This document shows, one piece after another, positions 5,021 through 64,000 of a stretch of 64,000 nucleotides of DNA; the stretch's first letter is position 1; each line of letters opens with the position of its first letter. Origin of the DNA: Epiperipatus broadwayi (lineage: Eukaryota > Animalia > Onychophora); assembly GCA_028023455.1 (NCBI GenBank), contig JAQFVV010000008.1, positions 15,748,001-15,812,000 of the forward strand, given 5' to 3'. The notes beneath the pieces are model-generated. The model searched no databases. It was given only the letters and a program-made list of their open reading frames with translations, and was not told the DNA's origin. The translations under genes and the position numbers were made by a program.

Positions 5021-8000
5021 TTAAACAATTTGATAGTTGCTATGACATGCTACAAGCATCCCTAAAAATTAAATATTGATAGTATTATTTAGCAAATCAA
5101 TGTTCAGTTTTAAAAAAAATAAATTGAACTCAGAAACATATCAGAATAACCACAGAAGATGAGAGAACTAGAAATAAATTGTTAGTTCCAACATTTTTAT
5201 TTAAAATTAAAAAATTTTTCAAATAAATATATTAAAAAAAAAACATGAAACATAAAAATGGGGGAAAAAAACCTGCTTTGATATATTAAACATATATTAA
5301 TGATTAATAATGAATGCAAAAATGAATGAGAAAAACAAAAAAAAATCCTTAGAAATAATGAAATGAATAAATTAACTAAATAATTAAAAATAAAAAATAA
5401 AAATGGACATTGAGACAGAAGAGAAAAGGAAAAGAATTACGATAACAACTATATTTCTATATTTAAGGTGAAAAGTCATAATATCAGAGATTGCAAAATG
5501 GAATAATACATTACAGTCTAATGAAGCAGAATATCATTTGCCAGAAATATATTGCAACAGGGCAGGTATAATCAAACCCTGTTGCGATAATTAGACAAAT
5601 ACGTATTCGTATACTTAACGCATTATTAAAAATATATATAGATCTTATTACTAACGTATTATTAAAAATATATATTACTTTACTAACAAAATTAATATTT
5701 ACAGCTTGATGTACAATCAACGGTCATTTGCGTGGTTGTACAGAATTGATTTAGTTATTTTAATTAAAAAAGAACTCATAGAAGAGGTATGGGGGGTTAT
5801 ACACTTGCTCTGATTTTTTTCTCTCTTTTGCCAAACCCAGCTATACTCCTATGTATATGTGTGAGTGCGTTTTTGAATCATTAAAAATGAAAAATTCACA
5901 AAATAAAAATAAATAATATTTTGTTTGATAAACTTTTAAATATATACATATTAAGTCAACAAAAGAACTTTAAATATCAAGATGGAAGACTAATTTTGCA
6001 GAACAATGGAAGTAATTATTATAAAAATCGTGGAATGTCTAATACTAATTAAATATTAATTGGAAAGAAATAGGTGTAAAAAGCTTTTGTGGTGCATTTT
6101 AACAAAGGCATACGGAATGTGAATGGAAATATAATTGAAAATGAATGAAAAGAAAGATAAATTGGATAATTAAAAAAAAAAAAGAATTAAGGATTAGTAT
6201 AAGTTTGGAGGTAGAAGAAAGCGGACAGAACGTGATGTACATTTTGATAAAATATGGTCAGGCTGGGGTAGAGGCTTCAAGGTGCGGAGGGTCCGAATCC
6301 TTTGCCCCCGAATGTATAGCAGCTGCCGATAGCGGAGAAGGACGTCAATCCCGGAGAATTCGCCTCAATAAGCAACAATATTGAATTGCCAGAAGAGAAA
6401 GAAAATAAATAAATAAACAGACTTTAGCCATGGAACCCGAACTTCAAAGAAGAAAAAAAACAAAGTTCGTTCACCAACAAAGGACCGGAGATTCCATTTT
6501 CACCAAGAGGATTTGATCAATTCCCTGGGGAAACCAGGTATTTTCTTTCTAATTACATCTATATTTCACTTTTAGTAAGCTTACTCCACAAATTTGAGAA
6601 AACTTTCATTTGACACAATTGTGAACTTAAAATTTATTTTCTTTGCCCGGAGAGGTCAAACTATTTACTACGAATTCATTAGTGTATAAATTAGTCCAAT
6701 TAAATCTTTGCAAAATACATATAATAGCATATTTGTGTGTGGGGAGTTTTGCAAAAGAAAAAGAGCAAACAAAAGAAAAACTGATATGATTTTGATTTAA
6801 AAGAGAAAAGAGACACTGATTTAACTTAAGTGAATAATATATATTTTTTTTATACATACGTAAATATCATAGCTAATAAATGTATATAAAATGAATGGTT
6901 TTTTTTTTTTTTTTATTTATGAGTTTTTTTTAAAATAAAAAAAAGAGAGAGTTAGATCTACTGCCGTAAATCTTACCACCAGCCCTGAGACTAGTCCAGG
7001 GCATTTCCATATGTTTCTCTCCAATTTTTATAAAATATGATTGGCTTGAGGTCATATTTCTCTAAATATTGGAATAAAATGAATATTTAAGAATAAATTT
7101 CTTTAAACCATTCCATATATTTCTTATTATACATACACCTTCAAGACAACATATATAAAATATATATGAAAACGCAAATCCCGTACAATATATTATAAGT
7201 GATTTATTTTTAAAAATGTACTTAAATAAAGTATTAATGTTTAAAAGTTAGTAGTAGATATAGAAATGAATAAAAATTATTAAAGAGAAAAGATTACATA
7301 AGAAAAATTTAATATTACCAAAGAAAATTGAAACTACTGAAAAATATCGCATGAATGGAGATTCAGATCTAAATCTGAGTGAAAAAATGTATATATAAAA
7401 TTTAACAGAAAAATGAGGTTGAAAATATATTGAAAAATTTAATATTTTAATAAAGAAATATATTGAATTATACTTTATATTATGAAAAAGAAAATTGAAA
7501 ACACAAATTAAGCCATCCATATATTGTAATACACAACTCATGCTTGAATTAGAGTAAAAAAAAAGAGATTTAATTTAAGAATAATTATATTGAATCACAA
7601 TAGAAATTAAATATGCTAGGTTGATGTAAAATAGATAAAAGCAATAATTATGAGATATAAAAGTATTTGTAGGTAGAAGAGCTAAATATAATCTGATACT
7701 GGGATTTAAAATCATAAAGCAAATTAGATTAAAAATTGAAGCAAATCAAATACATGTAAGATGCTATGATCTATAAAAGGAAAATCAGCACTGGAAATAA
7801 TGGAATCTATCATTAGGTCTGCCCATGTAGAACTCCCATCCTAACAAAAAAAGTAATTATCAATAATGAACACACATCTTCACAATTGTTAAGGATATGA
7901 AGGTTAGTATGAAGAATGATGATGAAAAACACTAGATTAACAAGAATGACTGAGAATTAATCAGCTGTCCAAGTTGTTGGCTATCTTAGGAGATAGGGAA

Positions 8001-8104
8001 TTATCTTACCTTTTATGGAAAATATAGAAGCCTTGACAGAAATGAATATTATTCCATACCTAATTGAATTAAACACATCTGCTGCCTTTATAACCATTCC
8101 ATTT

Positions 8105-9333
8105 ACATGAATAAACATTTATTTTATAACGTCTTGCGTGCGATTATAATTACGATAGAATGACAGCCTGTTAAGCTAATTGCGCAGACGCTGTGAGAAT
8201 GTTATTAATAAATGAATACCTTCAAACAACCACATGATATAGTATTTGTATAAGAGTAAAAAAGAATCCTCTTACCCTTACGACTCAAATGTTTATATAT
8301 GAGCAAATCTAAAGTAGTTGTAACGAAGGCGTGACTACATAATAGTCACTTTAAATCACTATATATAATGTCTGTATGAATGACGCCGATGAAATTTTCT
8401 AGAATTTACTAAACGCCACTCTAAACGAAACTAAATCATATACATGAATAAACATTTATTTTATAACGTCTTGCGTGCGATTATAATTACGATAGAATGA
8501 CAGCCTGTTAAGCTAATTGTGCAGACGCTGTGAGAATGTTATTAATAAATGAATACCTTCAAACAACCACATGATATAGTATTTGTATAAGAGTAAAAAG
8601 GAATCCTCTTACCCTTACGACTCAAATGTTTATTAGCTTAACAGGCTATCATTCTATCGTAATTATAATCGCACGCAAGACGTTATAAAATAAATGTTTA
8701 TTCATGTATATGATTTAGTTTCGTTTAGAGTGGCGTTTAGTAAATTCTAGAAAATTTCATCGGCATCATTCATACAGACATTATATATAGTGATTTAAAG
8801 TGACTATTATGTAGTCACGCCTTCGTTACAACTACTTTAGATTTGCTCATATATAAACATTTGAGTCGTAAGGGTAAGAGGATTCCTTTTTACTCTTATA
8901 CAAATACTATATCATGTGGTTGTTCGAAGGTATTCATTTATTAATAACATTCTCACAGCGTCTGCGCAATTAGCTTAACAGGCTGTCATTCTATCGTAAT
9001 TATAATCGCACGCAAGACGTTATAAAATAAATGTTTATTCATGTATATGATTTAGTTTCGTTTAGAGTGGCGTTTAGTAAATTCTAGAAAATTTCATCGG
9101 CGTCATTCATACAGACATTATATATAGTGATTTAAAGTGACTATTATGTAGTCACGCCTTCGTTACAACTACTTTAGATTTGCTCATATATAAACATTTG
9201 AGTCGTAAGGGTAAGAGGATTCCTTTTTACTCTTATACAAATACTATATCATGTGGTTGTTCGAAGGTATTCATTTATTAATAACATTCTCACAGCGTCT
9301 GCGCAATTAGCTTAACAGGCTGTCATTCTATCG
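8105..9333. mobile_element. Concatemeric 337-bp-unit retroposed repeat with internal inversion (family F1)
   Basis: About 1.6 units forward (period 8105->8442), then about 2.1 units inverted (TTAGC at 8633, 8970, 9307; period 337). 14-bp TSD TAACCATTCCATTT at 8091-8104 and 9334-9347. The units differ at only a handful of sites, mostly CpG transitions. Confidence 0.85.
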
Positions 9334-9777
9334 TAACCATTCCATTTGTAACAAAAAAAAAAAATTAAAAAATTTTATATCATAAAATGTTAAGAGGCTG
9401 AATCCTTACAGTAGACCAAGGTCATTATTTTCCAAGGCTTCAGAAGAAATTCAAAATGATTAATTAGAAGGGGAAAGTAGTTATTACCTCTTCTCACAAA
9501 CTAACCTGTGCCTAAAAACAAAGCATAACAGAAGCTAAATGGTACCCAATGGTTCACCAATATTAAATTTAAGTTTTAGATATATTATATTCCTTTAGAC
9601 GGTATGTATACATAGCATATCACCTTTCTATCTTAAGTTAAAGAAATCAGCTTATTTGTCTACCACAAAAGAATAAAAACAACTAATTTCAGAGTATGGT
9701 AACAGAACTATGTATTATATGGAGAGGAATAATTATAATTAAAAAAAGGGCTGCACAAATTAAGAAGGATGAAGCTG

Positions 9778-19620: not shown

Positions 19621-22529
19621 ATCATTTTTATAACAACTGAAGCAGAAAAAATATGAGAGTTTTAATATTACACAATTGTCAAAAACTATTACATCTATAA
19701 TATATCTCTAATATACTCATTTATGAATAAGTTCAATAATGTCTGAAAGCAAAAATTATCAGACTATGCTAAAAGTTCATTTTAAAATCAAATCAGAAAA
19801 GAAAACAATATAGTGGAAGACTGATGTTAAAGCACAATATTGCCATTCTAATTGGACAAATAAAAACGTGCTCAGAATGTAGTTCTTTTATGAAAAAGTT
19901 GATTTGTAATAAGTTAAGTTAATTAATTCATTATTGATTCTCAAGTATGTATAAAATATAAAAGTTTAAGCTTATTCATGGAGCAAATAATTCCAAACAC
20001 ATTTTATAATAACTTCCATATCATATTTTTAAGGAATAATGCAAACCATTCCCACCTTCAGTGTGAATGCCCATTCATTGGTCAGATTTTAAAAAATAAC
20101 TACTTTTATCTGATTCCCAGTTTGTTAAATGATAAATGAAATAAGATTCAATATTTTGAAAATGTGAAATTTTTATATTATCAATCATTTTTATAATTTC
20201 ACATTGTATTAATCAAACCAGTTCACAGTTTCAAATAACAAACTAGAAGAAATTTTAATAATTTTACTAAGTTTGTAAATAAATCATAGCTATTAAATAT
20301 GTAACATTAAGAACATAAATTTATTCGTGGAACAAGAAATACCAAAAATGTAACTACAAATCACAAGTCACTTCTTAACATTAATAAACTTGTAAACAAC
20401 ACCCATTATCTTGTATTAATATTAATTCATTGGTTAAATAATATGTTGAGAGTTAATTGCTCCATGAATAAGTTTTTATATTCTCAACATTACATATTTA
20501 ATGGATATGATTTATTTATAGACTTACTAAAATTATTATAATTTCATATGGTTTGTTATTTAAAACTCTAAGTTAGTTAGCTTAATTAAAAATTACAAAA
20601 ATTGCCATTGGGCTGTTATCAGATAAAAGTTATCATTTTTCATCTGATCAACAAATTAATAATAATTTGTAACTTTACTAATGATTCTTTAAGAATCTGA
20701 CTTGTAAATGGTTGCAGGAATATAATCGGAGTTACTTGCTCCATAAATAAGTTTGTATATGCTCAGTGTTACATATTTAAAATAATTGTAATTTATTTAG
20801 GGACTTGTTAAAACTTATAATATATACACAAAAAGATTGCAATTCAACATTAAATGTTTATCTCCAAAATGTCAACAGAAAAACAATTATGAAGTGGTTA
20901 TTCTTATGTTATTTATACTGTAATTTCTGAAAAAAAAATATACAAAAAAAAACAAAAACATAACTTTTATTATGAATTTTCTGCCATATATACATTTCAA
21001 TTTTTTTTTATAATAATCAATCAAATGCAATTAAGTAATGATTTTTTTTTTTAATTTTTAAAGGAATATTCACTAATAAATTAAACAATAAGTATAGACA
21101 AACTTTTTTAAACATTTCACGGATAAATTTTACGTAGCAACAATTTATGAAATATATAAAAATTATGTAATTTTTATTACTCCCAATTTCTGGCACAATA
21201 GCAATGTAAAATATTTTCACATTCATGTAAATACAGTAATAAATTTACATTATTCATTTTAATTTTTATTTTTTTAAGAAATATTTATTAATAAGTTACA
21301 TTTAAATCATGCTAATATATTATGATTAATTTTAAGCACGTTCATATTTTATCAGCATAGGTAGACCCCTACGCTTTGAAAATATTTATTGTCATGAAAG
21401 CATGTCCAATTAATAAGCCAGTATGTATGAAGAATAGTTCCTTTCATAATATTTCATTATAATTATATATATTGTAACCTTCCGCTTAGCTAGATAGAGA
21501 CAGATGTGGATAGGAAGTGCCAGAGAGATGCATTTGTAATAATGTATTCACCAGGGCGCCAAATTGTAACTATATCCATCAGCTGCTGTGCCAACTCAAG
21601 ATCATCATCACTTGACAAATTGTAAGTCCATGAGGAAAGCAAGTTTTCAAAATTTTTCAAAAAAAAAATTATAATAATAATTTAAGTTATAAATAGTATG
21701 TTTAGTTCTCATTTTGAATCCCATAATTATTAAATAAATGAATTAATTTGACAAATTATTGAAATCTGAAAACAACTCTCCACCACAGACTCAAGTCATA
21801 CAAACTCAACACAGCTATATGATCCCTCATGGCAGCTACAACAATTCCAGTTCTCTATTTCTTATGTTTAGATTGGTGTGAATGGATTGGTAATCCATGT
21901 AGAACCTCAAGAATCAGGCTCACAAGAAATATTAAAAGTTTTACTACCCACATAAAAGAAGAGAAGTCTTAACTCACCCCCCCCCCCCAACATATTAATT
22001 ATCTCTTTAGTCTCCACATAAACCACCTTCCAAAGTTACAATTAATTTCTTTTAAATGTTTATGTTTTTCCCCATCATATCTCTACCACAAATATTGCTC
22101 TCCACAATGCCATCTCTCTCACATGCATACAGGAGTGGAATGTACAATATTCTGAACTCAATAACTCTTCATTGTGATAGTATAACCGCAATGATAACGT
22201 CATCATTTAAAAGTTTCTGATTGTAAAACCTCTTGTTCTCAGGGTCCTGATTTATAGTGTGGAGTTAGAACTAATCACTTCCAAATTTATTGCAGACCAT
22301 TGAACACTATCCCAACGAATTTAACTCGAATAGACATACACTCATTTTAGAAGCTAAAATCTACTCTCAACTAAGGATAATAATCCTAATCATAATACTA
22401 ATAATAATAAACATTAGAAACTACTAAACAGTAAAAACAGTGAGGATTGCCAATTCCTCTACAAGCTTTATGATAAATGCTTAGCCAGAGCCAGCACTTA
22501 AAATATCTCTGTCAGGAACTCCTCCCCAA

Positions 22530-22573
22530 ACCCCTAACCCATGGTTTCGTGCTTTGGCACTCCTCAGAAAGGT
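22530..22573 (-). ncRNA. Type-I hammerhead ribozyme (family B, host-sense copy)
   Basis: Minus strand reads accttt CTGAGGA GTGC-CAAA-GCAC GAAA CC-ATG-GG TT^ aggggt. Core complete, perfect helix II, 3-bp helix III, GUU site, helix I with two G-U pairs. Confidence 0.7.
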
Positions 22574-22900
22574 GGTTCAGACATTAGATATAAAAATACC
22601 AACCCAAAGCCAAGCACTTATCTAAAAGTTATCTATTGAGTGGAAAATCTGAAATTTTCAGACATCTACATGTCTTCAAACCCAGCTATCCAACCCAAAT
22701 AGCTATATGGGGCTGATAGATTTTCAGCCATACCCCGCTGAAGATCTATCAGCCCCATATAGCTATTTGAGTTGGATAGCTGGGTTTGATGACATGTAGA
22801 TGTCTGAAAATTTCAGATTTTCCACTCAATAGATAACTTTTAGATAATTGCTTGGCTTTGGGTTGGTATTTTTAGATCTAGTGTCTGAACCTACCCTGAC

Positions 22901-22943
22901 ACCTCTCTGAGGAGAGCCAAAGCACGAAACCATGGTCAGGGGT
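22901..22943 (+). ncRNA. Type-I hammerhead ribozyme (family B, plus copy)
   Basis: acctct CTGAGGA GAGC-CAAA-GCAC GAAA C-CATG-G TC^ aggggt. Canonical core and GUC site (cleavage after 22937), palindromic ACCATGGT helix III, one helix-II mismatch. Confidence 0.8.
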
Positions 22944-23807
22944 TTGGGGAGGGGTTCCTGTCAGAGATATTTTAAGTGCTGGCTCTGGCTAAGCATTTAT
23001 CATAAAGCTTGTAGAGGAATTGGCAATCCTCATTGTTTATAACTTACAAGCTTAAGAGATAGAGTCATGTGATCCACGACTTATTTTGACTACTAAACGG
23101 TTACTTAAATGAAATATTTGTTTATAATAAATTTTGACTAGAATCTTAGCGACTAGGAAGGTATAGTGCAATAAACTTAACAAATTAAATATTAAATTTA
23201 AAATTAAATTATTCTATTAGATGTTTGCCATATGATCATCATAATTTCAAATATGAGTAAATATTTCAGCAAATTAATTCTCAAATCTCCACAAACAAAA
23301 AAAATATATATATATTAATTTAATAGCAATATTTAATAAAGATATTTTGTGACACATCTGCACTGGAAAACATGGAATATTTTCTATAACTTTTCTATAT
23401 ATCGGATTTCTGGAATCAATGAATACCCAAGCATTAAGACACAACACCAAAGTATAAATTCAAAACAAAATATTTATTAACATATTAACGATAAATACTA
23501 CAATATAAAACACAAACATCATAGCGATCCAAACAGGAAAAGAAAATAATGAAATAATAATTACAAAATATATCTATAATAGATCTACACTGGCTACGGA
23601 TTACAAATTCTTTCCGGGTTCATCCCATCTTGGATAGAACCCTCGTCCCAACATTGGTACTCATATTCTAGTACTGGGGACAAATAACTCATATTATAGA
23701 CTATTCAATAAGCTGTTTTGACCCATGATATATTAATTTTAAAATGCCAATTATTTTCTTCTCTGAAGCAGCACTTCATCAATACTAATATTACAATAAA
23801 TATAATT

Positions 23808-24837
23808 GAGATATTTATTTTATATAGCATGATGTTTATGAATTGTAATAAACTAAAGATCAGCTTTTCAAGCTAATTCACATGCGCTTTAGGAATCTTA
23901 TTAAAAAATAAATACTTTCACTTCCAACACAAGATAAAGTCTTTGCGAAAGAATAGAATGAATCCACCTATTCTTTCAACCCAAATACTTAAGTATGGGC
24001 AAATCTTAAGCACTGGAAAGCGTGAAGATAAAGCAATCACTTTAAATTACTTTTTACTATGTCTGAATGAATGACGCCATCGAAATTTTCTAGAATTTAC
24101 AATACGTCATTCTTAAATGAAACTAAACATATGTAAATGAGACCTTTCTTTTATATAGCGCGATGTTTATGAATTGTAATAAACTAAAGATCAGCTTTTC
24201 AAGCTAATTCACATGCGCTTATGAATCTTATTGATAAATGAATACTTTCACTTCCAACACAAGATAAAGTTTCATTTAAGAATGATGTATAGTAAATTCT
24301 ACAAAATTTTGCTGGCATCATTCATTCAGACATTGTAAAAAGTAATTTAAAGTGATTTGTTTATCTTCACGCTTTCATTTCCAGTGCTTAAGATTTGCCC
24401 ATATTTAAGCATTTGGGTTGAAAGAATAGGTGGATTCAATCTATTCTTTCGCAAAGACTTTATCTTGTGTTAGAAGTGAAAGTATTCATTTATTAATAAG
24501 ATTCATAAAGCGCATGTGAATTAGCTTGAAAAGCCGATTTTTAGTTTATTACAATTCATAAACATCATGCTATATAAAATAAATGTCTCATTTACATATG
24601 TTTAGTTTCATTTAAGAATGACATATCGTAAATTCTACAAAATAATTGGTTTATCTTCACACTTTCATTTCCAGTGCTTAAGATTTGCCCATACTTAAGC
24701 ATTTGGGTTGAAAAAATAGGTGGATTCATTCTATTCTTTTGCAAAGACTTTATCTTGTGTTGGAAGCGAAAGTATTCATTTATTAATAAGATTCATAAAG
24801 CACATGTGAATTAGCTAGAAAAACTGATCTTTAGTTT
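23808..24837. mobile_element. Concatemeric ~336-bp-unit retroposed repeat with internal inversion (family F2, homologous to F1)
   Basis: About 1.4 units forward (23808-24270), then inverted units (period 336, 24269->24605; the second has a ~50-bp deletion). 13-bp TSD AATAAATATAATT at 23795-23807 and 24838-24850. Collinear with F1 over the whole unit. Confidence 0.8.
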
Positions 24838-27080
24838 AATAAATATAATTATTATTGGAACAATTAGCTTTAGCTTTTAGCCCTTATCAAATTAAATCAA
24901 TATTTCATTCCCTCCACTAAAATATTCACATATATTATAAATTACTCTAATTTGGTATTTAAACTTATAACTAATTTTACAAGCTATTACTCCCTATAAA
25001 CTTAATGCTTAACTTCTATTTTATAATTGTATAATAATTTAAGAAGTTACAACATTCTGCACACACACTTGTATTGCATACTAGAGCCCCAATATGAGTT
25101 TCTCTACCACTATTTTACCAGTCCAGGGGTGACTTGCTTTAATATGAACTAGATGTGGTGCACATTGCTTGTCCAGGTTCAAATTATTAACCTTAAATTT
25201 GGAATAATTATCGGTTCAATAACAAGCTATGATCTAAGCTCAGTTATACTATACATCAATTTCTAGAAATATGTTTTTACTTATAATTCCCTAACGCAAA
25301 TATTGTGTTCATTTTGCCTTGAAATCATATATAAATGATGAAATAGATGTTACATTATTTAAATTCAAGTATACAAAATATCTTTTCAGCATGAATCAGC
25401 TATTTACTTAAATGATACTTTGGTTATCAATTTAGTTATTATGTAAAATTGATCAACATTGTTGATGAAAGAATTTAGTTACAATTTAATAAGTATGATT
25501 AATTAGATTTTTGTGAGATATAGAATTAAGTTTTTTCCTTTGTTATAATATGAATTATCTACCTATTACTTGCAAGATATTGACAAAAAGAAATCATCAA
25601 GAATTGGTTTTTTAATAGGTGGAAAACAAAATATTTTTTTATTTATTACAACTAATAATAATTTTATTATTAGAATAACATATCATTTGTTTTTTCAAAT
25701 TGTTCAAAAGCATATTTATTATTTTAATGATAGAATCCATCCATCTTATTGCCAGTTGTCCTCTATTCTTTTCCAAGCATTTTCCAACAAATATACTAAT
25801 ATACAAATTTGTATGCAGATCAGGCTTAAATAAATTTCTTTCTATAATTATTAGCTTTACTAACTGTATTAATTATAATACAAAACATAATCAAATTATG
25901 ATTATATAATAACTAGCTACAAACTTATAACTATATACTTTGAAGCTCCTATGAACTTTCTATTTTGATAAAAAATAAAACTAAGATTTTTTTTCATTTC
26001 TTTTCAACACAATTGATGCCATGGATTTACACCTTTCACACATTGAAATTGTATTGTGATTGTAATAATATCATCAAAGATTGCCATTTAAATACTAACA
26101 ATAGTAAAAGCATTATCATCAGCTTTAAATATATATTGTAAAGAGTACAAATGAATAGGGATAATATGGAGGAATGACAATTATTATCATCCCTACTGAA
26201 AAATCACAATAATCTCAATTAACAGTAACAACAAATGGTCATCAACAAATATAAAAAGAGCCGGGGAGAATTGGTATAAAGTAAAATAAATAGTTATACA
26301 ACTATGAGTTACATTACCAATACTAAACATGAATAATGAACAGTCATCCCTTGTGACTGAATTTAAGAGAGATTTAATGCCAACATGTAAATTATCTAGT
26401 CAATTCAGACTTATGACATACTGTAACTGTTGGAATTTCACAGTCTACATGCAAATTACCCGAGGGCAATTCACATGTGCATTACACATTCTGAATCACA
26501 GAATACCAACTTTTCTTTTACAGCCTGCTAAGGTCAGGGAGAAACAAGAAACTCATAAAACTGTCAAAAATAACAAGACAACATTATTTATTCATGTATA
26601 TACAACACAACACATACACTGGCATGACTTTAGTTAATTAGTTCATAAATAAACTTAAGGTAAATAAACCTTTCCAATTTTTTTTTTAATTTTGATTATG
26701 CTCACATATGGTACACGGTGGTATATTAATTCAATACTTTAAAATGTCCTATTTTATACTATTAATGTTAAGTATTTGAATTGATTCTAATCTATTGCAT
26801 AGACACCTAAGTGCTCTCAACTAATATCACCGCTGTCCTAATACTAATTGATAAAGCATATAAATTAAGGCTAGTCTTACTACTGTCTGTTGTGATCAAT
26901 TACAGGTTATGATAGTAGTATGCAATAAATAATAAAATATAATCAGAGATTCACATCTGTATTACAATAGTTATATAAGAATAAATACATGTGGTAATTG
27001 TATGCCTGTGGTAGGAATTAACCTTCTACTGCATGTAGAGCATACAGTGACGGGTAGTCGCATAGTATCACTATGACATA

Positions 27081-28794: not shown

Positions 28795-31700
28795 TGTTAT
28801 ATCTTCCAGTTATAATACTCACTGGCGAACAATCTATGCAGTAAGCTAATCCTTGCCCTGACTATATATGCATACAATAATTTTATCACAAAGACTAACG
28901 CCGGTGGAATAAGAAAAACAGATTTAATTATAATACACTAATATATACATATTTACAGTGATACATTAAAACAATCATAATCTATTTATATTAACAAACC
29001 CGAAGCGACCTACTTTATAGTCCCTATTCTGACTCTTGGACGTTCGGAGGCCAGCTGTCCGCTCTGGGGCTACCGTGCTAAATAAGTGACATTCAGCACC
29101 TTTCCCAGTTCATCTGCATCGGTAGAGCTCCCAATTTTTAGTGTCAAATGCTTTACACTTTCACTCATTTTTTCAGTCCTGATTTTCTGGATTTGATTGG
29201 TCAAATCTTGTCCGTCCTGGTCGGATCAATCCCTCCCAGTTTTCCTTTTGGCTTAAGTTTTACTTTGATTGATTACCCTTTGCAGTTCGATTGCTTTTTA
29301 ATTAATCATCTTGTTTGTCTGCAAAGTTCCTTTGTTAATTAACCTTCCTATCTAAAAGGATATGTTTACATGTTGTTTTAAAAAATAACACAGCTATTAA
29401 AGTATAATATTATTTTAAATTAACGAAGTATTTTTATCTTCATGTATAAATATAACTTACGTATGAATATGCGATACATTATACACATACATACGTTTAA
29501 ATATTAAATACCTATTTACAACATTTACTATTATTATTCTGTGTGTATGTGTATTTTAATTATACACATACATAACAATACTTCCCCCAAGTTTGAAGAT
29601 TATTTGTTAGTCTTCGAACTTAAAATATAATCATTTAAATATTTGGGAGAGTTTATTTTCCTTTTTAGTCATTGCCGTGAATTATTTTCCATTTGTAGAG
29701 ATGATTTCTCTGAAGGCAAAATGTTTAATTGAAAATCAGTTTCTCGAGTGGCGCAAATTTCTGGTTTATTACCATTTTTTAGAGTCTCGTCGGTTTCTGT
29801 TGTGCAGAGATTTGGAATCCAGTCATCACTTTCATTTCTCCGTAGCTGGTTCACATGTTTTTTTAGTATCTTACCATCGCCCATGCAAACTGTCACGACT
29901 TGTTTTGACAGATGGCGAATAACGACCCCTGGAAACCATCGATTTTTTAGTGTGTTCTTTACCCACACTCTCTCTTGCGGCTGGAATTTATACAAACAAC
30001 TCTGTTGTTTGTCTCATTGTTTTGTTGGCACTATTTTTGCAAGTTTTGTTCGCAGTTTTCTGCCTAAATATATTTCCGCTGGTGATTTGCCAGATTTGGC
30101 CACTGGGGTAGAATGCTGGTGCAGAAGAGCAGTCAATACAGCTTTGTCGATTTTCATTTCACCCATTTTTTTTATAGCTGACTTGAGGCTTTGCATTGCT
30201 CTTTCAGTCAGTCCATTTGATTGGGGGTGGGAGGGAGTACATGTTTTATTCCCCAATCTTGCATGGCCTCTGCGAACTTTTCCGATGTGAAACTTGTTCC
30301 ATTATCTGAGATTAAAGTTTCTGGGAATCCGTGATGAACAAAAATCTCATACAGAGTGCTAACTGTTACCTCTATGCTGGTATTTTTCATTGTTTTATAC
30401 TCAGCCCACCCTGAATACGAGTCGACTACAACTAGAAATAAATGGCCTTCGAATGGACCACAGTGGTCTATATGGATTCGTTGCCATGGGTTGTCTGCCT
30501 TTGGCCATGTTTCAAAAGTCGATAGGGGTGCTTTAGCGCACTGTTGGCAGTTCTCACATTTCTTTATATATCTTTCTATATCTACATTGATGTTTGGTCA
30601 CCATATGATGCTACGAGCTAGGGCTTTTGCCCTCACAATGTCCGGATGTCCTTCATGAAACAATTTTAATATTTGTTGTCTCCCCACCACAGGTACCAGC
30701 ACTTGGTCGCTCCTCAAAATGCATCCTTTACATATGGATAGCTGTTCGCGGGCGTTCCATAATCGTTTGTGGAGAAAACTTGGGCATTTGTTCGGCCATC
30801 TTCCTCTTATCTTATTTATTATCCACTGATAGCCGTCATCTTCTTCTGTCCATCAAGCTACAATTTTGCTATTTAAGTTTTGCTTTTGAAGTTCTCTTTC
30901 TAATACTGCTGTTTCATCAAGATCGGTCATGCGTGATAACGCGTCTGCGTGTCCAATTTGTTTTCCCTTTTTGTATTGCAAACTGTAATCATAGCCTGCA
31001 AGAATGTTAAGCCAACATAACAATCGGGGGCTTAAATGATCAGGTGTATGTTTATTTCCGAATATTCCCAGCAGTGGTTTGTGATCAGTTATATTAGTAA
31101 ATTTCCTCCCATATAGATATTGGTGGAATTTTTTCACTCTGAACAAAAATTGTGAGCGCTTCCTTGTCCAATTGGCTATAGTTTTTTCTGCCTTGGACCA
31201 TGTGCGTGAAGCATATGCTATAGGTCGCTCTTCCGACTGGGCTGGATGACTTAGTACTGCCCCGACCCCAAATTCAGATGCGTCGGTGGTCAACATAATT
31301 TCCAGATCAGTTATAGTGTACTAATAATTTCTCTGAAGTAAGCAGCACTTTAGTGCGAATAAACACTGTTTCATCTTGCCCATCCCATTTCCATTTCTGG
31401 TTTTTTCCTCAGTAGATTATATAAAAAAGTGGCCACATGGGCTTTTCATTTTAAAAAAGATTCAAAAAATTCACCAAGCCTAGGAAAGCTTGTAGTTGCT
31501 TCACGTTTGTGGGTCTTGCTGCTTCTGCTACTGATTTAGCCTTTTCGGGGGAAGGGGATGTGCCGCTTCTCGATATAATGTGGCCCAGGAATTTAATTTC
31601 CTTAGTTTTCCAAATGCACTTTCCAGTATTCAGCTTTGCACCAAACTCATTTAACCATTCACATATCTTATCTACTCAGTTTCTAAGTTCTTTGTCTGTG

Positions 31701-34388
31701 GTCGCTGTTACAAGGATGTCGTCAAAATATGGTATGACGCCATCTAATCCATTGAGGAGAGTTTCGATTTTCGACTGAAATATGCTAGGGGCCGATGTTA
31801 TTCCGAATGGTAGTCTTTTACATTTGTATAGCCCAAGATGCGTAGTAATTGTCAGTATTCTGGACGCTTCCTCTGTAACTGGTATTTGATGGAATGTAGC
31901 GTTAAGGTCTAACTTCGCAAAGAAATTAGATTTTTGCAATGAAGCGATAACTTCTCTAGCAATTGGTACAGGGTATGCACTCTTGTTTAATGCTTTATTT
32001 ACAGTTACCCTATAATACCCACATAAGCGTATCTGACCATTAGGTTTAGTTACAATTACTACTGCAGTGGCCCAATCTGACTTTTTCGTGGGTTCCAACA
32101 CCCCTTTCTTGACGAGGTCATCAATTTCTTTTTCTACTTTTACTTTCTGAGCGAACGATACCTTTCTATGTTTGTAAATTATGGGTAGAGCTGATGTGTT
32201 CATTTCTAATGATACCGGCTCAGTTTTAATAATTCCCGGCTCCCCATTAAATAAATTTGGAATTTTATTTTCCATTTCTTTTTCCAACTCAACATTTTGT
32301 AAGAATGTCAATCTAATCCCTAATTTATTAAACCACTCATGGCCGATTAATGGACTTATCGGGGCATGTACTATATATAATGGTAAATTGACAATTTTAC
32401 CCTCTACTCTATTTACTGGAGCATTAACCATGCCCTTTATTTTAATAGCATTGCCATTTACGTCTAACACTTTCATGTCAGTTTTTACTATTTCGGGTTT
32501 TTGCTTACAATTTTCTGTAATGGTCTGCCAATCGCGTAGTGAAATTAGGGTTATACCGCTCCCACTGTCCACTTCCATGTCTATAGGGCGATCGTATATT
32601 TTAACTTTTATAATTATTTTCTCATTAAGACTGGTTGCTGTACTGTTAATCATTGTAAACTGTTTTTCTTTTCCCTGTAATTTATGGTTAGGACTGTTTC
32701 TTGTGTGTAGTGTTTCATTTTGGTCTCTCCAACACGTTTTGCCTATACCCTTTCTTATTACATAATTTACATTGTTCGTGTCTAAAATAGAACGCCTTTT
32801 TTTTCCACAACAAAAACAGATAACAGGGTTTCTATTATTACTGCCATTACTTTCATTATTTTCTGTGGATTTCTGTTCCACTGTTTTGAAAGTTTTGTAA
32901 ACTTCGTTCTGCTTATTCCCCCCATTATTGAATTCTGCGTATTTTTTGGACTGTTCCAAGACGAGCTCGTAGGCTTCGCTACGTTTGACTGCCTCCATGT
33001 AATCGAGATTCGTTACTGACAGTAGCTGTTGCCATAAGATGTTGCTGTTTATGCCTGTCAGGAACTGTTCAAGGAGAGCTTCATCTAAGTAAAAACCATA
33101 CACGAAGTCTTTAGCAAACACTCACAGTGCACAATCAAAATCCTTAATCGTTTCATTTCTAGCTTGCAGACGATGGCGGAACTGTAGTCTAGCAACGTAA
33201 CGTGAAGGAGTGGGGTTAAAATAATTACCCAATTGCTCTTTGAAGTCACTGTATGAGCATTGCTCGGGGGTTAAAGGCGCTACTAACCGATTTGCGATTT
33301 CTATAACCGCTTTACCTGCGAAACATAATACGGCGGCTATTTTATACTTATCATCTTCGACTCTATTAATAAAAAGATACTTTTCTATGTGTTCACCATA
33401 CTTTCGGCCAACTGCTCATCTCGTTTATGTCAAATTTGCCAATGGCCATATGCAATTTATCCATTATACCCAAATATTGTACTTAAAAAATTTCTGCTTT
33501 GTGTAAATGGTGAATATCAGCAATTTTAATACACACTACTCTAGCTTTACCAGGTTCGAACTCTTGACTGCGCAAAATGTTATATCCGCCAGTTATAATA
33601 CTTACTGGGGAACAATCTATGCAGTAAGCTAACCCTTGCCCTGACTATATATGCATACAATAATTTTATCACAAAGACTAACGCCGGTGAAATAAGAAAA
33701 ACAGATTTAATTATAATACACTAATACATACATACTTACAGTAATACATTAAAACAATCATAATCTATTTATATTAACAAACCCGAAGATATACAAAAAC
33801 AATAATGAAGATCTATGCGACCTACTTTATAGTCCCATGCTGACTCTTGGACGTTCGGAGGCCAGCTGAAGGCTCTGGGGCTACCGTGCTAAATAAGTGA
33901 TGTTCAGCGCCTTTCCCAGTTCATCTGCATCGGTAGAGCTCCCAGTTTTTAGTGTCAAATGCTTTACACTTTCACTCATTTTTTCAGTCCTGATTTTCTG
34001 GATTTGATTGGTCAAATCTTGTCCGTCCTGGTCGGATCAATCCCTCCCAGTTTACCTTTTGGCTTAAGTTTTACTTTGATTGATTACCCTTTGCAGTTCG
34101 ATTGCTTTTTAATTAATCATTTTGTTTGTCTGCAAAGTTCCTTCGTTAATTAACCTTCCTATCTAAAAGGATTTGTTTACATGTTGTTTTAAAAAATAAC
34201 ACAGCTATTAAAGTATAATATTATTTTAAATTAACGAAGTATTTTTATGTTCACATATATATATAACTTACATATGTATATGCGATACATTATACACATA
34301 CATATGTTTAAATATTAAATCCCTATTTACAACATTTACTATTATTATTTTGTGTGTATGTGTATTTTAATTATACACATACATAACA
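28795..34388 (-). mobile_element. Full-length Ty3/Gypsy LTR retrotransposon (Mag-like single gag-pol architecture), inactivated
   Basis: LTRs 28795-29577 and 33578-34388 (TG...CA; 9 mismatches in the first ~210 bp plus a 29-bp indel). 5-bp TSD CCAAC at 28790-28794 and 34389-34393. PBS-like at 33551-33575; PPT TTGGGGGAAG next to 29578. Domain order gag-CCHC-PR-RT-RH-INT. Confidence 0.95.
29669..33464 (-). pseudogene. gag-pol of the 28795-34388 element (frameshifts and stops)
   Basis: ATG at 33464. Motifs: PR MEVDSGSG, RT PYFDDIL, RNase H TTDASEFGVGAVL and TDHKPL, integrase HIDHCGP / SDNGTSF / SNGLTERA, and a C-terminal SH3-like KFQPQERVWVKN...HVNQLR. Broken by a +1 shift near 33400, a TGA near 33125 and further lesions. 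Confidence 0.92.
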
Positions 34389-44399: not shown

Positions 44400-47100
44400 A
44401 TATGCATATATATATTTTCTTGATATGGTTTTCTTGTATTATAAATTCCTTGGATTCCATTCTCGCAATCTAACTAATATGCATTTGGACTGGCACATTT
44501 AGTGTTAGTAATGTACAGATTGCAGAATTTGTGGAAAATAATTCCTTTGGATTGCTTACATGCAGGGTTTTGACAAATACCCTGTCTCCAATTTTAAATT
44601 AGTATTTGGATTTCTTTTTGTTTTTGACTCATCTTTTCTCATTTGTATTAATTTTTGATATGTTTTCATTTGATCACTTTCCAGATTTATGGGTGATTCT
44701 GTTAGTATTGGTATGGGCATTTTGATAGGATTAGAGTGTTTTTACCCAAGTGTAATCTAATGGATGTGAATCCAGTGGATTCACTTACACTCTAGTTTAT
44801 GAAGTTTATTACATACTGTGTATGTTTCACCCAATCTTTATGTTTATCCTTTAAATAAGTCCTGAACAAATGTCCAAGTTCTGACTGTGGATTTCTAAAA
44901 GAGATTAGTACATGTATTATTTGATACTTTTCTACCCATTTGATCCATTCTTTGGATGGGAAAGGAGCACCGTGATCGGTTAAGGTCATCCCTGATTTTC
45001 CAACTTTTTCAAAATGGAGTGTCTCTAATATGTTGATAGTATGTTTAGTGTTAGCTTGAGGTATTTGGTAAGCTGACACAAATTTTGAGAAAAGATCATA
45101 GACTACTAGTAAGTATTTTTTCTTGTTGATTAATGGACAATAAAAGTCCAGAGCTAAGACCTTGTTTGATCTTTCTGGGATAATTGACTTCATTGAACTT
45201 ATATAACTTTTTGTTTAATGGCTTGGTACTTAAGCATATGCAATAACCTTGGATTTCATTCATTATGTTTTTGTATATTCTAGGCCAGTAAAACCAGTTC
45301 TTTAATATTTGTTCAGTTTTGTGGACTTTGTAGTGCCCATATTGTGTGAATGGACCTTTCAAGATTTCAGGTATTTCAGGTACTATTATCCTCCATTCAT
45401 CTTTGTCATTATTTAATTTGTATTTTAAGACCTGTTTATCTAATTGGTAATATTTAAGATTGTTGGCTTTATAAAGAATTTTCTCTTTTTTTTTAGTTTT
45501 AATAATGGGAAACAGATCTTTATCTTTGTTTTGAAGGTTCTGAATATTTTTTGAGTTGTTATCTACATTTTCATTAATCAGGAAATTAATGTTTAAAATA
45601 TAGGTATTGTCTACCTTAGATGTTGTTCTAGCTGAAATGGATTTCGACTTAGCACATCGGCTACAATGTTTCCAGGTCTTTTACAGTATTGTACTGTGTA
45701 AATGGATTCTTGTACCAGAAAACTCCATTTAACAAGATGATTATTACTTAAGTAGCTGTGATTTAAGAATTCAAGACTTTTATGTTCAGTGATCACTATC
45801 ATCTCTGATCCGAGAAGTATTTGTCAAAATTTTTGGAAAGCCCACACTATTGCCAGTATTTCTTACTCAGTAACCATATAATTTATTTCTGGAGCTTTTA
45901 ACAGGCGGCTAATGACAGAGAACTCTTGTTTGGCCAGCCTCTTGAATTTGGGATATGGTTATTCCCAATCCATATCCATTACTATCAGTTTGAATGATGA
46001 GGGGTTTATCAAAATCAGGAAAAGCTAGCATAACTTGCTCTAAAAATTTTGTTTTAATTTTATCAAACACTTTGACTTGTTCTTCACCCCAATCCCATCA
46101 TAAATCTTTTCTGATTAGTTTTAACAACGGTTCCATGTGATAAGCAAATTTTGGGTAGAAACAGTTATAAAAATCACATAATCCCAGAAATGATCTGATT
46201 TTCTTTTTGTTTTTAGGCTTAGGAAAATTCTGTATCGTACTAATCTTATCAGGATGAGGCCTTATTCCATTACAACCAATAATATGACCTAAGAAGATTA
46301 CTTCATTGCATACTAATGTACTCTTCTTAAAATTGACTTTTATCCCTTTGTTGGAATATTCAAGTTCTAAATTTCATATTCTATGGTTAACAGAAAGGTT
46401 GATAGTTTCAACTTCATTTTGTAGAGTATCATGGCTCTTAATTAATTTTTCAATACTACTTTTGTTTTGCATCACTTGTGTTCCGATTAAACCTTGTTTT
46501 ATTTCAATACATTTAGAATCGTATTTTATTGCATTGATTTTCTTTCCTTGAATTTCCAGTTTATTTTTTAAGTCTTCCTTAGATTGATTCATCTCTAATT
46601 GTGACTCTCCTAGTTTATTATCTGCCTTTATTTGATATTTTCTTTGATCTTGTTCTATTTCTGATTTGAACATATTATGGTTTTGTTTCATTTCTAAGAA
46701 CTTACTATCTAATTTACTTATATTTTTTTTTTTAGTTTGTTAAAACCTTTATTCACATTTACTGTCCTTTTCCTCATTGTCTTCTTTTATTTCTACCAAT
46801 TTAATATTGATATCCAACTGCAAATGGTTTATGGCAGTATTTTGTTTTGCTATGTCAGTTTTTAATTCAGATAATTCTGATTTCAATTCCGTTTTGAGTT
46901 CAATACATTCAACAGTTTATTTTTCCATTTTAGTGGATAATTCAGCATTTCATTTTTCCATTTTCCATTTTAGTGGATAATTCAGCATTTCATTTTTCCA
47001 TTTTTGATAGTTCAGTTGTTATATTTACTGACATTTGTTGAATCATTACCCTCAATTGATTAAACATCATTCATGCTTGTTTTTTCTTCTTTTGTATCTG
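44400..47100 (-). pseudogene. Gypsy remnants: coiled-coil gag N-terminus joined to RT C-end, RNase H and integrase
   Basis: Coiled-coil ORF 46374-46691 and upstream. Then GIKVNFKK...EVIFLGHII...PDKISTIQNFPKPKNKKKIRSFLGLC, QTDSNGYGLG, TEHKSLEFL, H..YGH...HKT...LKNWFYWP..CCIC, LALDFYCPL and LTDHGAPF. Confidence 0.85.
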
Positions 47101-47566: not shown

Positions 47567-50150
47567 ATGTGATGTGATGTACTGTGACTTTTCCTTAAAC
47601 GGAGTCAGGAATCTCTCAGCAGCTATGCCCAGAGAAACCTGTTAGCCACTTTACCTTCCTTTTCCATTGTCCACCCTAAGTTTTCCCATAATCTGCTCCA
47701 TCCCATTTCCACAACATAATCTTTGTCAACTCCATGACCTTCATATCTAAATCCCCCTTATTTTTCCCCAAACCCAGCATAAAAACCAATAACTCTCTGT
47801 ATAATCACTTTGTTCATATTTAACCTTCCATAACTTCATTATTTGTACCCTTTCTGCTTCCAAACATTTACATTGAAGTAACAGATGCCTAATATTTTCT
47901 ATGCCTTCTTTACACAACTTACAGACTAAATAACCCATATTTTTCCATTTACGTGTATATTCCCTTGTTGCTAAAGATCCTGTTCGAGCCTTAAACAATA
48001 AACTACTTTCCTTACTATTATCGTAAATTAACTCACAACCAATGTTCCGTTTACTTATATATATATTTAAACTCGTTTTACTCTTCCATACTAGTTCTTC
48101 ATCTGTCCAACTCCCTATTTTTTATTAAAGCATCTATTCTTCTATCCCACTCCTTCCCACTATAACACTCAACAATCCTCCTAACACAATCATCCCATCT
48201 TTTGTACAAGTATACTGACATAACTTCTTTATCCAATTCTTCTGCATACCGCATTACCTTTCTCACCCATCTTGTTGGCTGCCCTTTACTTGTAACCCAA
48301 TTAAATACTATTTTGGCTATTCTTTTATTATCCATGAACTGCAATCTACCGAACATTTTCAATTTGCTTTTTGCATCCCTCATATAAAAACTTGACCATC
48401 CCATTTCTCCTTGAATTGCCTCTTTTGCTGTCCACACCTCAGCATCTAATGCATGTCTTCCTACTTCCCTTTGTACTTTTTCTAAGCAATCTAATACCCC
48501 TTTACTAACACATAATGCATCATTGCCGTATGTTAACCCTGCTACTGCCACTCCCTTCCAGACAATTCTAGCTACATCATATTTATTATATGAAAACAGT
48601 GTTAATTTCTTTATCAATCCCTTTCTTTTCTTTGCTTCATTTATCAATTTTTTCTCCCATTCATCCAAGCAATTTTTCTTATTACTCAAGATGATTCCCA
48701 AATAACTATATCTATTCACCACACTTAACTTTATATTCCCCAATAAGAAATCTTTGTCTTCTCTTTCCCCAGTATTCACTATCATTATATTTGATTTTTC
48801 TTCACTAAATTTAATCCCCATATCTTTACCCACCCTTGCGCATGTCCTCAGCATAACTTCCATATCTTCTCTTCTTTCTGCACACAAAAAGACATCATCC
48901 GCAAAAAAAAAGTCCGGACAATGTATATACTCTCTTGCCACCTGTTAACGGTATCTCTATCCCTCTTCCTAGTCTTTCTATTGCTCTCTCCATTTCACTC
49001 AAATACAACACGAACAAAATAGGTGACATAGGGCATCCTTGCCTCAGTCCCACCCCATTTTTAACTTTAACTGATTCTATATCCCCTAATTGGTATGTAT
49101 AGTAATTATTTTCATATAATTTCTTAATAACACCCACTAAAGCTTCATCCATTCCCAGATTTGTTAAACTTATCCATAATCTATTTCTATTCACTCTATC
49201 ATATGCCTTCTCTATATCTATAAAACTATATACAACTGTCTACCTGAATTCCTACTCATATCTATAAGTTGTGTAACTACAAATAAACTATCTCCTATAA
49301 GCCTATCTGACCTAAAACCTCCTTGCATTTCCCCCACTACATTATTTTCTTCCATCCATTTTCCAACTCTTCCAGCCACCATATATGAAAAACTTTATAT
49401 AAAACTGATGTTACTGCTATTGGTCTATAATTATTTAACTTTCTATGATCCTTACCTTTTCCTTTAAATAATAATCTTACTCTTGTATTACTCCAACTAC
49501 CCGGAAAAACTCTCTTCTGTGCCATCTTATTAAAACATGATAGTAACTTTACTTTTGCCCTATGCCCCAAATTCATTACCATCTCTGTTGCCCATCCATC
49601 TAATCCTCTTGTCTTACCACTTCTCAATTACTTCACTGCCTCATTCAGTTCATTTTCTGTAAATGCAATATTCCCATTACTATATGCTTTCATATTTACT
49701 ATCCCTCTGTCCTTCACATCTAACATCTTTTCTATATCCATTACATAACTATTCAATATTCTAATTCTTCTCTAGAGCTACACTCTATTCCCTCCTCATC
49801 CAGTAATACTATCTCTCTCTCCCCTAAATTTCTCCTTTTAATGTAATTCCAAAATTTTTTACTCCCATCTCTTCCACTTTTATTAATATCATCCAATAAT
49901 TTACTATTTAGTTTCATTCTCGCTCTATAATTATCTATTTTAGCTAACTTCTTCTTTTCTAAGTACTTTTCCCATTTAGCATTAATATCTTTTTCACTTT
50001 CTTTGTTCTTAATAGCACACTTATATTCTCTGCATGCTTTTTTCCTCTCTTTTACACTTTTACTAACTCTCATTTTTCTATTACTTTTATTCACTCCATC
50101 TACTGGATACAATTTACATTACATTTCCTTTTAAACATGTACCCATATAT
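47567..50150 (-). mobile_element. 5'-truncated non-LTR retrotransposon (RT plus C-terminal CCHC; clade unassigned)
   Basis: Consecutive broken ORFs: RSGKTRGLDG, NYRPIAVTSVLYK, GLRQGCPMSPILF, FFADDVFL, YSYLGI, GEMGWSSF and CKLCKEGIENIRHLLLQC. The 3' end has a short (CACAT)n tail at 47567-47580. No endonuclease domain retained. Confidence 0.9.
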
Positions 50151-62084: not shown

Positions 62085-62180
62085 TTACATTATCTTAGAA
62101 CGTATTACATTCAAATATTAGCCTTTCAAGCTAATTGTGCATACGCTTTGCGAGTGTTAATAATAAATAATTACTTTGTA
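62085..62180 (+). repeat. Fragment of a third diverged member of the F1/F2 337-bp family
   Basis: TTAGCCTTTCAAGCTAATTGTGCATACGCTTTGCGAGTGTTAATAATAAATAATTACTTT aligns with F1 CAGCCTGTTAAGCTAATTGCGCAGACGCTGTGAGAATGTTATTAATAAATGAATACCTT. Confidence 0.55.
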
Positions 62181-63126: not shown

Positions 63127-63909
63127 AGCCAATAAATATCACATGATCATCATTTCTTATGCCTGCTTATAACTGTTACTAAAACAGGCAAAACTCTCCA
63201 TTTAGTAATGCCACTCAGTGCAAGCCAGAGTAATCAATGGATGCCAGAAAGCTTGTGCATAAAATCCCCATCTAGTGCCTACTCATCTAACATCCCCAGA
63301 CTAGTTTCTGTCTTGTGGCCTTTGTCAGTGAGGAGCCTTGAATCTGAGAGCAATGTGCCTACTCCAGCAGCCATCTTTTATCTCTACTTAACTACAAAAC
63401 TGAGTCTTAAATTGAAAACCCAATAATATTTTCAATCCAAGCTCATTAGCCTATATAGTCATATAGGTCTGAAATCATAAAAAATGATGATCATGTGATG
63501 TTTATTGGCTTAAAACCAATCCTACCTAATAGGATAATAGTGGCTATGGTTATTAAAAAATCAAAGACACCAAAATTTATTGGTACTGAACTGAGTTCAG
63601 ACCTATATGACTATATAAGCTAATGAGCTTTGATTAAAAATATTATTGTGTTTTCAATTTAGACTCATAGTTTTGTAGTTAAGTAGAGATAAAAGATGAC
63701 TGCTGGAGGTTGCATTAGATCATAAGATCTAGGTGCAGTGCTCTCAGATCCAAGGCTCCTCACTGACGAAGGCCACAAGCCAGAAACTAGTCTGCGGATG
63801 TTGGATGTGTAGGCACTAGATGGAGATTTTATGCACAAGCCTTCTGGCATAAATTGATTACTCTGGCTTGCACTGAGTGGCAATACTGTATGGAGAGTTT
63901 TGCCTGTTT
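63127..63909. mobile_element. Penelope-type inverted-arm insertion, hammerhead family A (longest copy)
   Basis: Antisense arm 63180-63473 with a ~55-nt tail to its left, sense arm 63596-63909. An inverted copy of the tail end lies at 63483-63513. 13-bp TSD TAATATTAATTTA at 63114-63126 and 63910-63922. Confidence 0.85.
63755..63800 (+). ncRNA. Type-I minimal hammerhead ribozyme (family A)
   Basis: tcctca CTGACGA A-GGC-CACAA-GCC-A GAAA C-TA-G TC^ tgcgga (cleavage after 63792), palindromic ACTAGT helix III. The mirror copy at ~63292-63334 (minus) has CTGACAA and a helix-II mismatch. Confidence 0.75.
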
Positions 63910-64000
63910 TAATATTAATTTATTTATATGAAAGTATGTTTATTTGTTTTCATTAAATATATATTTGAAAGAAATAAGTTTTACATACAAATATTTACGG

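Follow-up and report, generated by a model that had tools for sequence, protein, structure and literature searches.

The window analysed here, a 64,000-nt stretch of the genome of the onychophoran Epiperipatus broadwayi (assembly GCA_028023455.1, contig JAQFVV010000008.1, positions 15,748,001 to 15,812,000), contains at positions 8105–9333 an array of a short repeat that runs head to tail on each side of an inversion. This locus raises the question of how such a repeat is copied and inserted, and in particular whether its template was a circular RNA processed by an undescribed ribozyme or enzyme, as its preliminary description had proposed. Our analysis revealed that 8105–9333 arose by a single recent insertion and consists of a non-coding 337-nt repeat that is abundant in the genome, here called family F1. 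About 3.65 copies of the unit, with a period of exactly 337 nt, are arranged as two inverted tandem arms and enclosed by a single pair of target-site duplications, in agreement with the single insertion, the 14-bp duplication and the roughly 3.7 head-to-tail copies flanking an inversion that had been described. The duplication, TAACCATTCCATTT, is a direct repeat of 14 bp at 8091–8104 on the left and 9334–9347 on the right, identical at 14/14 positions.

We define the R-sense of the unit as the plus strand of the right arm; read in this sense, the 3′ ends of both arms are outer and the 5′ ends central. The left arm (8105–8633, RNA sense minus) contains 1.57 units; it extends from its 5′ end at 8633 (unit position 222) to its 3′ end at 8105 (unit position 76). 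The right arm (8632–9333, RNA sense plus) contains 2.08 units, from unit position 1 at its 5′ end to unit position 28–31, the short end point, at its 3′ end. The two arms are 99.2% (left) and 99.7% (right) identical to the F1 consensus and meet head to head at 8632–8633 with a 2-nt overlap (microhomology). A full 337-nt unit that serves as reference lies at 8969–9305 on the plus strand and is predicted to adopt a branched fold. No open reading frame of at least 110 aa is present within 8105–9333, and the locus thus does not carry the reverse transcriptase and GIY-YIG ORF of an autonomous Penelope-like element (PLE).

The left arm outruns the right arm by 48 nt (8105–8152, minus strand). This one-sided tail runs from unit 76, the long end point, down to unit 29 and occurs only at the outer end of the left arm. 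It includes AATAAA, and an AATAAA-containing outer tail of about 47 nt had been reported previously. The tail is present as reported, but it is the stretch between two initiation sites, as in insertions of the Penelope type, rather than a polyadenylation tail.

A search of the 5.6-Gb genome with one unit as query gave at least 1,552 first-look candidate places for F1. The matches listed are 96–100% identical, and among them, wherever both strands occur at one place, a minus arm is always followed by a plus arm. From these more than 1,500 candidates, 17 distinct loci were read together with their flanks, comprising 13 with two arms and four with a single arm. Target-site duplications, first described at the window copy, were found at all 13 two-arm loci, with lengths of 12–16 bp (median 13) and with unrelated AT-rich DNA as targets. 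In 13/13 of these loci one outer end lies at unit 24–31 and the other at unit 66–80, and a one-sided tail of 38–52 nt is present (13/13). Each arm is 0.4–4.6 units long, and at the central joins the RNA-sense 5′ ends meet in mid-insertion with an overlap of 0–10 nt and no filler (13 loci). The inversion is no accident of the window copy; it is the standard shape, seen in 13/13 two-arm F1 loci and also in the sister families F2 and F3. All four single-arm loci have their 3′ end at the short end point and start at unit 194–202. A short end was paired with a long end in every two-arm locus, 13/13 for F1 and 15/15 with F2 and F3 included (P ≤ 3e-5 if the ends were independent), indicating that the two priming events are coupled.

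The mean divergence of F1 from its consensus is only 1.2%, which shows that the family is very young. Among the variants that recur between F1 loci (L001–L030), 18 out of 22 are CpG transitions, while the unit has only 14 CpG sites. CpG is strongly hypermutable in F1, and the host probably methylates CpG in these repeats. The F1 repeat is also deep in four small sequencing runs (contigs only, two organisms), in which its flanks are uncovered and which are silent on transcription, strand and ends.

Folding predictions separated the two strands of the unit clearly. The R-sense (plus) unit folds at −85.7 kcal/mol (z −5.6), an energy as low as which was given by 0/100 dinucleotide shuffles, against −59.4 kcal/mol (z −1.5) for the complement, and F2 and F3, folded as circles, gave the same strand asymmetry. 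The predicted F1 fold comprises a hairpin at 3–17, a closing helix at 44–53/326–334, a long hairpin at 73–155, a hairpin at 170–187 and an arm at 188–300. A consensus fold of F1, F2 and F3 has 95 pairs with 94.7% of cells paired, and the fold energy of the alignment is −52.4, compared with −17.3 ± 3.8 for column shuffles and −26.1 for the opposite strand. Double-sided changes were found at 18 pairs, against 0–3 when the 3′ partners were slid by 1–3 columns; this covariation comes from three sequences (F1, F2 and F3), two of them 87% alike. Read on the opposite strand, the same pairs are only 79% paired because 49 cells are G.U. The stem between AGTGGCG (9066–9072) and CGTCATT (9101–9107) singled out in the preliminary description is real, with two G.U pairs in the plus-strand RNA that become A-C on the other strand; it corresponds to unit 98–104/133–139, lies within the consensus fold, and its two G.U pairs are A-U in F2. 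The better fold and the compensatory changes on one strand indicate that the RNA strand is the one whose 3′ ends point outward, since both folding energies and covariation favour it over the complement, as had been suggested. On this strand F1 is predicted to be a conserved branched RNA, and the outward 3′ ends fit the orientation expected of target-primed reverse transcription.

The target sites carry a further signature. Alignment of 13 F1 empty sites, oriented with the tail arm on the left, revealed TTAC outside the duplication at the left and G/T-W-A-A outside it at the right, with A in 12/13 and 11/13 sites at two neighbouring positions; position −1 is C in 7/13. The two flank motifs are reverse complements of each other (TTAC/GTAA), so both strands are apparently nicked in the same context and the 3′ overhangs each prime a cDNA. 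It has been shown in vitro that a PLE enzyme cleaves and extends both strands, prefers AT-rich DNA and is a predicted dimer, and that it starts reverse transcription from two internal sites whose spacing corresponds to the genomic tail (PMC11167929). PLE insertions are tandem or inverted and have a tail of 30–40 bp, often at one end only; Naiad PLEs have no hammerheads, yet make tandem and inverted copies; and among Chlamys elements non-autonomous multicopy forms exist (PMC8557442).

PLEs are abundant in the same genome, where GIY-YIG gave 10,243 first-look candidates, many of them as inverted pairs, and the coding PLE copies that were read share the insertion shape of F1. The copy at L034:876-3029 is head to head; its two arms do not differ at any position (100% identity), 12 bp are duplicated at the target (TTGAGCAATTAA), and a tail of 46 nt extends one arm but not the other. 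Its target (ATAC, N12, ATAA) agrees with the F1 motif. The identity of its arms suggests a very recent insertion, and the PLE machinery may still be active in this genome. In two other coding copies the duplication is again 12 bp long, and the tail measures 54 nt in L059 and 58 nt in L060; the tail of L060 is family sequence, present in L055 and L056 too. The duplication and tail of F1 match those of these three coding copies, so that a Penelope-type layout, already suspected for the locus, is upheld. BLAST and nhmmer searches with F1, F2 and F3 as queries found no autonomous PLE sharing the F1 sequence among the 30 PLE loci read, out of more than 10,000 GIY-YIG candidates. A weak similarity of F2 positions 270–320 to several PLE coding regions (E ~0.04) is not significant. 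The sole apparent link between these families and a PLE, a match at L050, proved to be a separate F3 insertion beside the PLE, flanked by a duplication of its own; F3 also adjoins a PLE in L061. Within the window, pieces of LTR-type retrotransposons (protease, reverse transcriptase, RNase H and integrase) and a separate reverse-transcriptase fragment were seen at 29748–33121, 44792–45193 and 48099–48941.

Taking the layout, the fold and the target sites together, we consider it likely that F1 is a non-coding element copied from a folded RNA by Penelope-like machinery, retrozyme-like but without a known ribozyme. In the scheme that follows, the enzyme acting on F1, the order of events and the origin of the multimeric template are what we infer. 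Both target strands would be nicked, with some 13 bp between the nicks and a loosely palindromic sequence around them (TTAC, N12–16, GTAA), and each freed 3′ end would prime a cDNA on a structured F1 RNA longer than one unit. The cDNA of one strand would always start near unit 28, just 3′ of a conserved hairpin, and that of the other always near unit 66–80, at the foot of the long hairpin. Each cDNA would extend for 0.4–4.6 units, tending to stop just 3′ of stable helices, and the two would then be joined in mid-insertion through 0–10 nt of microhomology. The expected outcome would be two inverted tandem arms, a one-sided tail of about 40–50 nt and a duplication of 12–16 bp; the inversion would arise because reverse transcription is primed from both nicked target strands. 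Possible sources of the multimeric template are read-through of an array, strand transfer on an RNA with terminal redundancy, and a circle.

The inner 5′ ends of the arms bear on where copying would stop. Of the 17 short-end arms, seven start at unit 186–202 and are n+0.5 units long, the four single-arm copies all being among them, and 8/13 long-end arms start at unit 287–328. Both clusters are located just 3′ of stable helices, namely the 8-bp hairpin at 170–187 and the arm at 188–300 (base pairs 198–204/285–291). Our preferred reading of these ends is pausing of the polymerase, followed by a join at microhomology.

Whether F1 contains a ribozyme was addressed with Rfam models and with a pattern search. 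A search of the whole 64-kb window gave nothing at the gathering score and no ribozyme at E ≤ 1, and it missed minimal hammerheads located elsewhere in the window; at that size it is therefore too insensitive, and a size-matched control was run. The control region (21850–23300, same size) gave Hammerhead_1 at 22530–22573 on the minus strand (24.2 bits, E 0.004) and, as its inverted partner, HH9 at 22889–22959 on the plus strand (20.5 bits, E 0.046). By contrast, 8000–9450 (F1) and 23700–24900 (F2), searched on both strands at E ≤ 10, gave no ribozyme; specifically, the Rfam models for twister, pistol, hatchet, HDV-like, hairpin and VS ribozymes had no match in F1 or F2 on either strand at this threshold. 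The arrays of F1 and F2 hold every circular permutation of the unit, so all were covered. Given that the control search detects a minimal hammerhead (E 0.004), the negative Rfam result for F1 is meaningful. In addition, a search for CUGANGA followed by a helix II of at least 3 pairs and GAA (or GAAA in a relaxed run) found no hammerhead pattern in any of the three families F1, F2 and F3, whichever strand was read and even when one mismatch in the core was allowed. The absence of a CUGANGA...GAAA core and of any other known ribozyme, which had been noted from the sequence alone, is thus borne out. No tRNA-like structure was found in F1, and a scan for bacterial promoters and terminators was at chance level.

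The hammerhead families said to occur elsewhere in the window were found as well, although only below the Rfam gathering score. At 22530–22573 and 22889–22959, one hammerhead lies in each arm of a head-to-head element built around a near-perfect 100-nt palindrome (22681–22784); this element is about 1 kb upstream of the F2 insertion, and both its hammerheads fall below the gathering thresholds. A second, GC-richer element with inverted arms occupies 63177–63914 (arms 63177–63361 and 63730–63914, 91% complementary) and contains a hammerhead-like core, CUGACGA...GAAAC, near 63755–63790; according to nhmmer it is unrelated to F1.

In the strongest alternative, PLE machinery would copy F1 as a rolling circle from an RNA circle one unit long, and an undescribed ribozyme or a host enzyme would cut and ligate that RNA. 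Several features are compatible with such a circle. Since very young loci have arms of up to 4.6 units, there must be some way in which multimers are regenerated. The marker variants of a subfamily are uniform across all units and both arms of a locus, as a homogeneous template would give, and differences within a locus are mostly CpG transitions, as expected if the units were identical at birth. The F1 RNA is predicted to be compact and highly structured, and the clustering of inner 5′ ends at unit 186–202 in copies of n+0.5 units could mark a site of processing in each unit. However, the sequence just 5′ of unit 198 is unconserved, with a 5-nt deletion there in F2, and the position of both 5′-end clusters, immediately 3′ of stable helices, is consistent with a pausing polymerase. 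In F3 the cluster is shifted to about 164–181. The ribozyme search, with its working positive control, also speaks against the circle, since it found no known ribozyme in F1. Moreover, at locus L030 two neighbouring units, and no others, carry a double change outside CpG (103T/104C); a monomer circle would not yield this pattern at birth, and later conversion would be needed. Variants within loci do not separate a circle from a linear multimer consistently: they are ambiguous overall, and L018 has partly mirrored CpG variants.

The layout itself had been put forward as evidence for a circular RNA and an undescribed ribozyme. That argument falls, because PLEs with or without hammerheads, the hammerhead-less Naiad elements among them, produce tandem and inverted copies (PMC8557442), and the layout alone is therefore no evidence for a circle or for a new ribozyme. 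Neither a new ribozyme nor a ribozyme-free circle is needed to explain anything seen here, and we regard a circular template as unlikely. Its most specific form would make the F1 RNA a genome-encoded circle of viroid size (337 nt) without a known ribozyme, cut near unit 198 by a new self-cleaving motif or a host enzyme, then ligated and copied by a Penelope-like enzyme in rolling-circle fashion; this is less probable still, although, if true, it would parallel in an animal the processing of viroids without ribozymes, here coupled to retrotransposition.

Two further explanations fare much worse. Mobilisation of F1 as a SINE-like element by a LINE, with the inversion arising by twin priming, would account for the duplications of 12–16 bp and the microhomology at the junctions, both of which also occur in twin priming of the L1 type. 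We nevertheless hold it to be highly improbable, since F1 has neither a poly(A) or simple-repeat 3′ tail nor a tRNA, 7SL or 5S head; its inversion is the rule (13/17 loci) and always goes with the pairing of a short and a long end; the palindromic target motif implies equivalent nicks on both strands; and the shape is identical to that of coding PLE copies. Hardest of all to credit is an origin at the DNA level with no RNA step, as a dispersed satellite, a Helitron-borne repeat or a fold-back element, for although errors of replication or repair can give tandem plus palindromic DNA, at every two-arm locus a different AT-rich target, unrelated to the others, is duplicated over a variable length (12–16 bp, whereas Helitrons make no duplication), the end points are fixed to the phase of the unit without terminal inverted repeats, and the folding asymmetry due to G.U pairs points to selection on one RNA strand.

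Copying from a folded RNA by Penelope-like machinery, the reading that we prefer, places F1 close to several known systems. Like the metazoan non-LTR retrozymes (Cervera and de la Pena 2020, PMC7229834; bioRxiv 10.64898/2026.07.22.740005), F1 is non-coding and AT-rich, falls within the size range of retrozyme repeats and circRNAs, and shows dispersed short tandem arrays, a duplication of more than 4 bp and a strongly folded RNA; it also co-occurs with PLEs, which are thought to mobilise retrozymes. A retrozyme, however, has by definition a type I hammerhead in every unit, and circular RNAs of retrozymes have been shown to exist, whereas F1, F2 and F3 have no hammerhead on either strand. F1 thus works like an animal retrozyme yet fails the defining hammerhead test. 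With PLEs, including Naiad (Craig et al. 2021, PMC8557442) and the PAc enzyme studied in vitro (PMC11167929), F1 shares tandem and inverted 5′-truncated copies, a one-sided tail, two internal initiation sites, AT-rich targets and priming on both strands; it differs in that it encodes no protein and is not detectably similar to any of the 30 PLE copies inspected. Like F1, non-autonomous Chlamys elements (MRC1 of Chlamydomonas, for example) are PLE dependants without ORFs, with pseudo-LTRs and multicopy head-to-tail forms, but they belong to green algae and have 3′ ends in common with identified autonomous families (PMC8557442), while F1 had no match in 30 PLE loci; the F1 genome also has type I hammerhead repeats of the animal-retrozyme kind. 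L1 twin priming likewise gives an inversion with facing RNA 5′ ends, microhomology at the junction and a flanking duplication, although F1 differs from it in the absence of poly(A), a near-obligatory inversion, two fixed internal starts and a palindromic target.

The fact that hammerhead-free F1 still builds tandem and inverted arrays suggests that a ribozyme is dispensable for the Penelope-type insertion shape, and F1 therefore has a bearing on the role, still to be established, that hammerheads play in these elements. Its insertions constitute a natural record of the pairing of short and long starts, the palindromic context of the nicks, the microhomology joins and the stops beside stable helices, in line with the single in vitro study of a PLE enzyme (PMC11167929) and going beyond it.

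F1 is accompanied by related families. F2 and F3 are 66–68% identical to F1 and 87% identical to each other, and their insertions have the same head-to-head two-arm form and pairing of short and long ends. In the window, F2 is represented by a two-arm insertion at 23809–24837 with a 13-bp duplication (AATAAATATAATT), the long end on the left and the short end on the right; one of its units carries a deletion (spacing 290 instead of about 331–336). F3 gave 1,733 first-look candidates in the genome, in minus-then-plus order as in F1. Several such families exist, each with more than 1,500 candidate places, and they are easily mis-annotated as satellites or fold-back DNA. Short 5′-truncated fragments of a fourth related family, located at about 62090–62175 of the window (minus strand) and at L049:1-68, retain the conserved ATTAGCTTGAAAGGCT hairpin and the short end point. 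Finally, L012:972-2395 contains two adjoining F1 insertions, in which the second set of arms begins about 50 nt past the end of the first, suggesting insertion beside or into an existing F1 copy.
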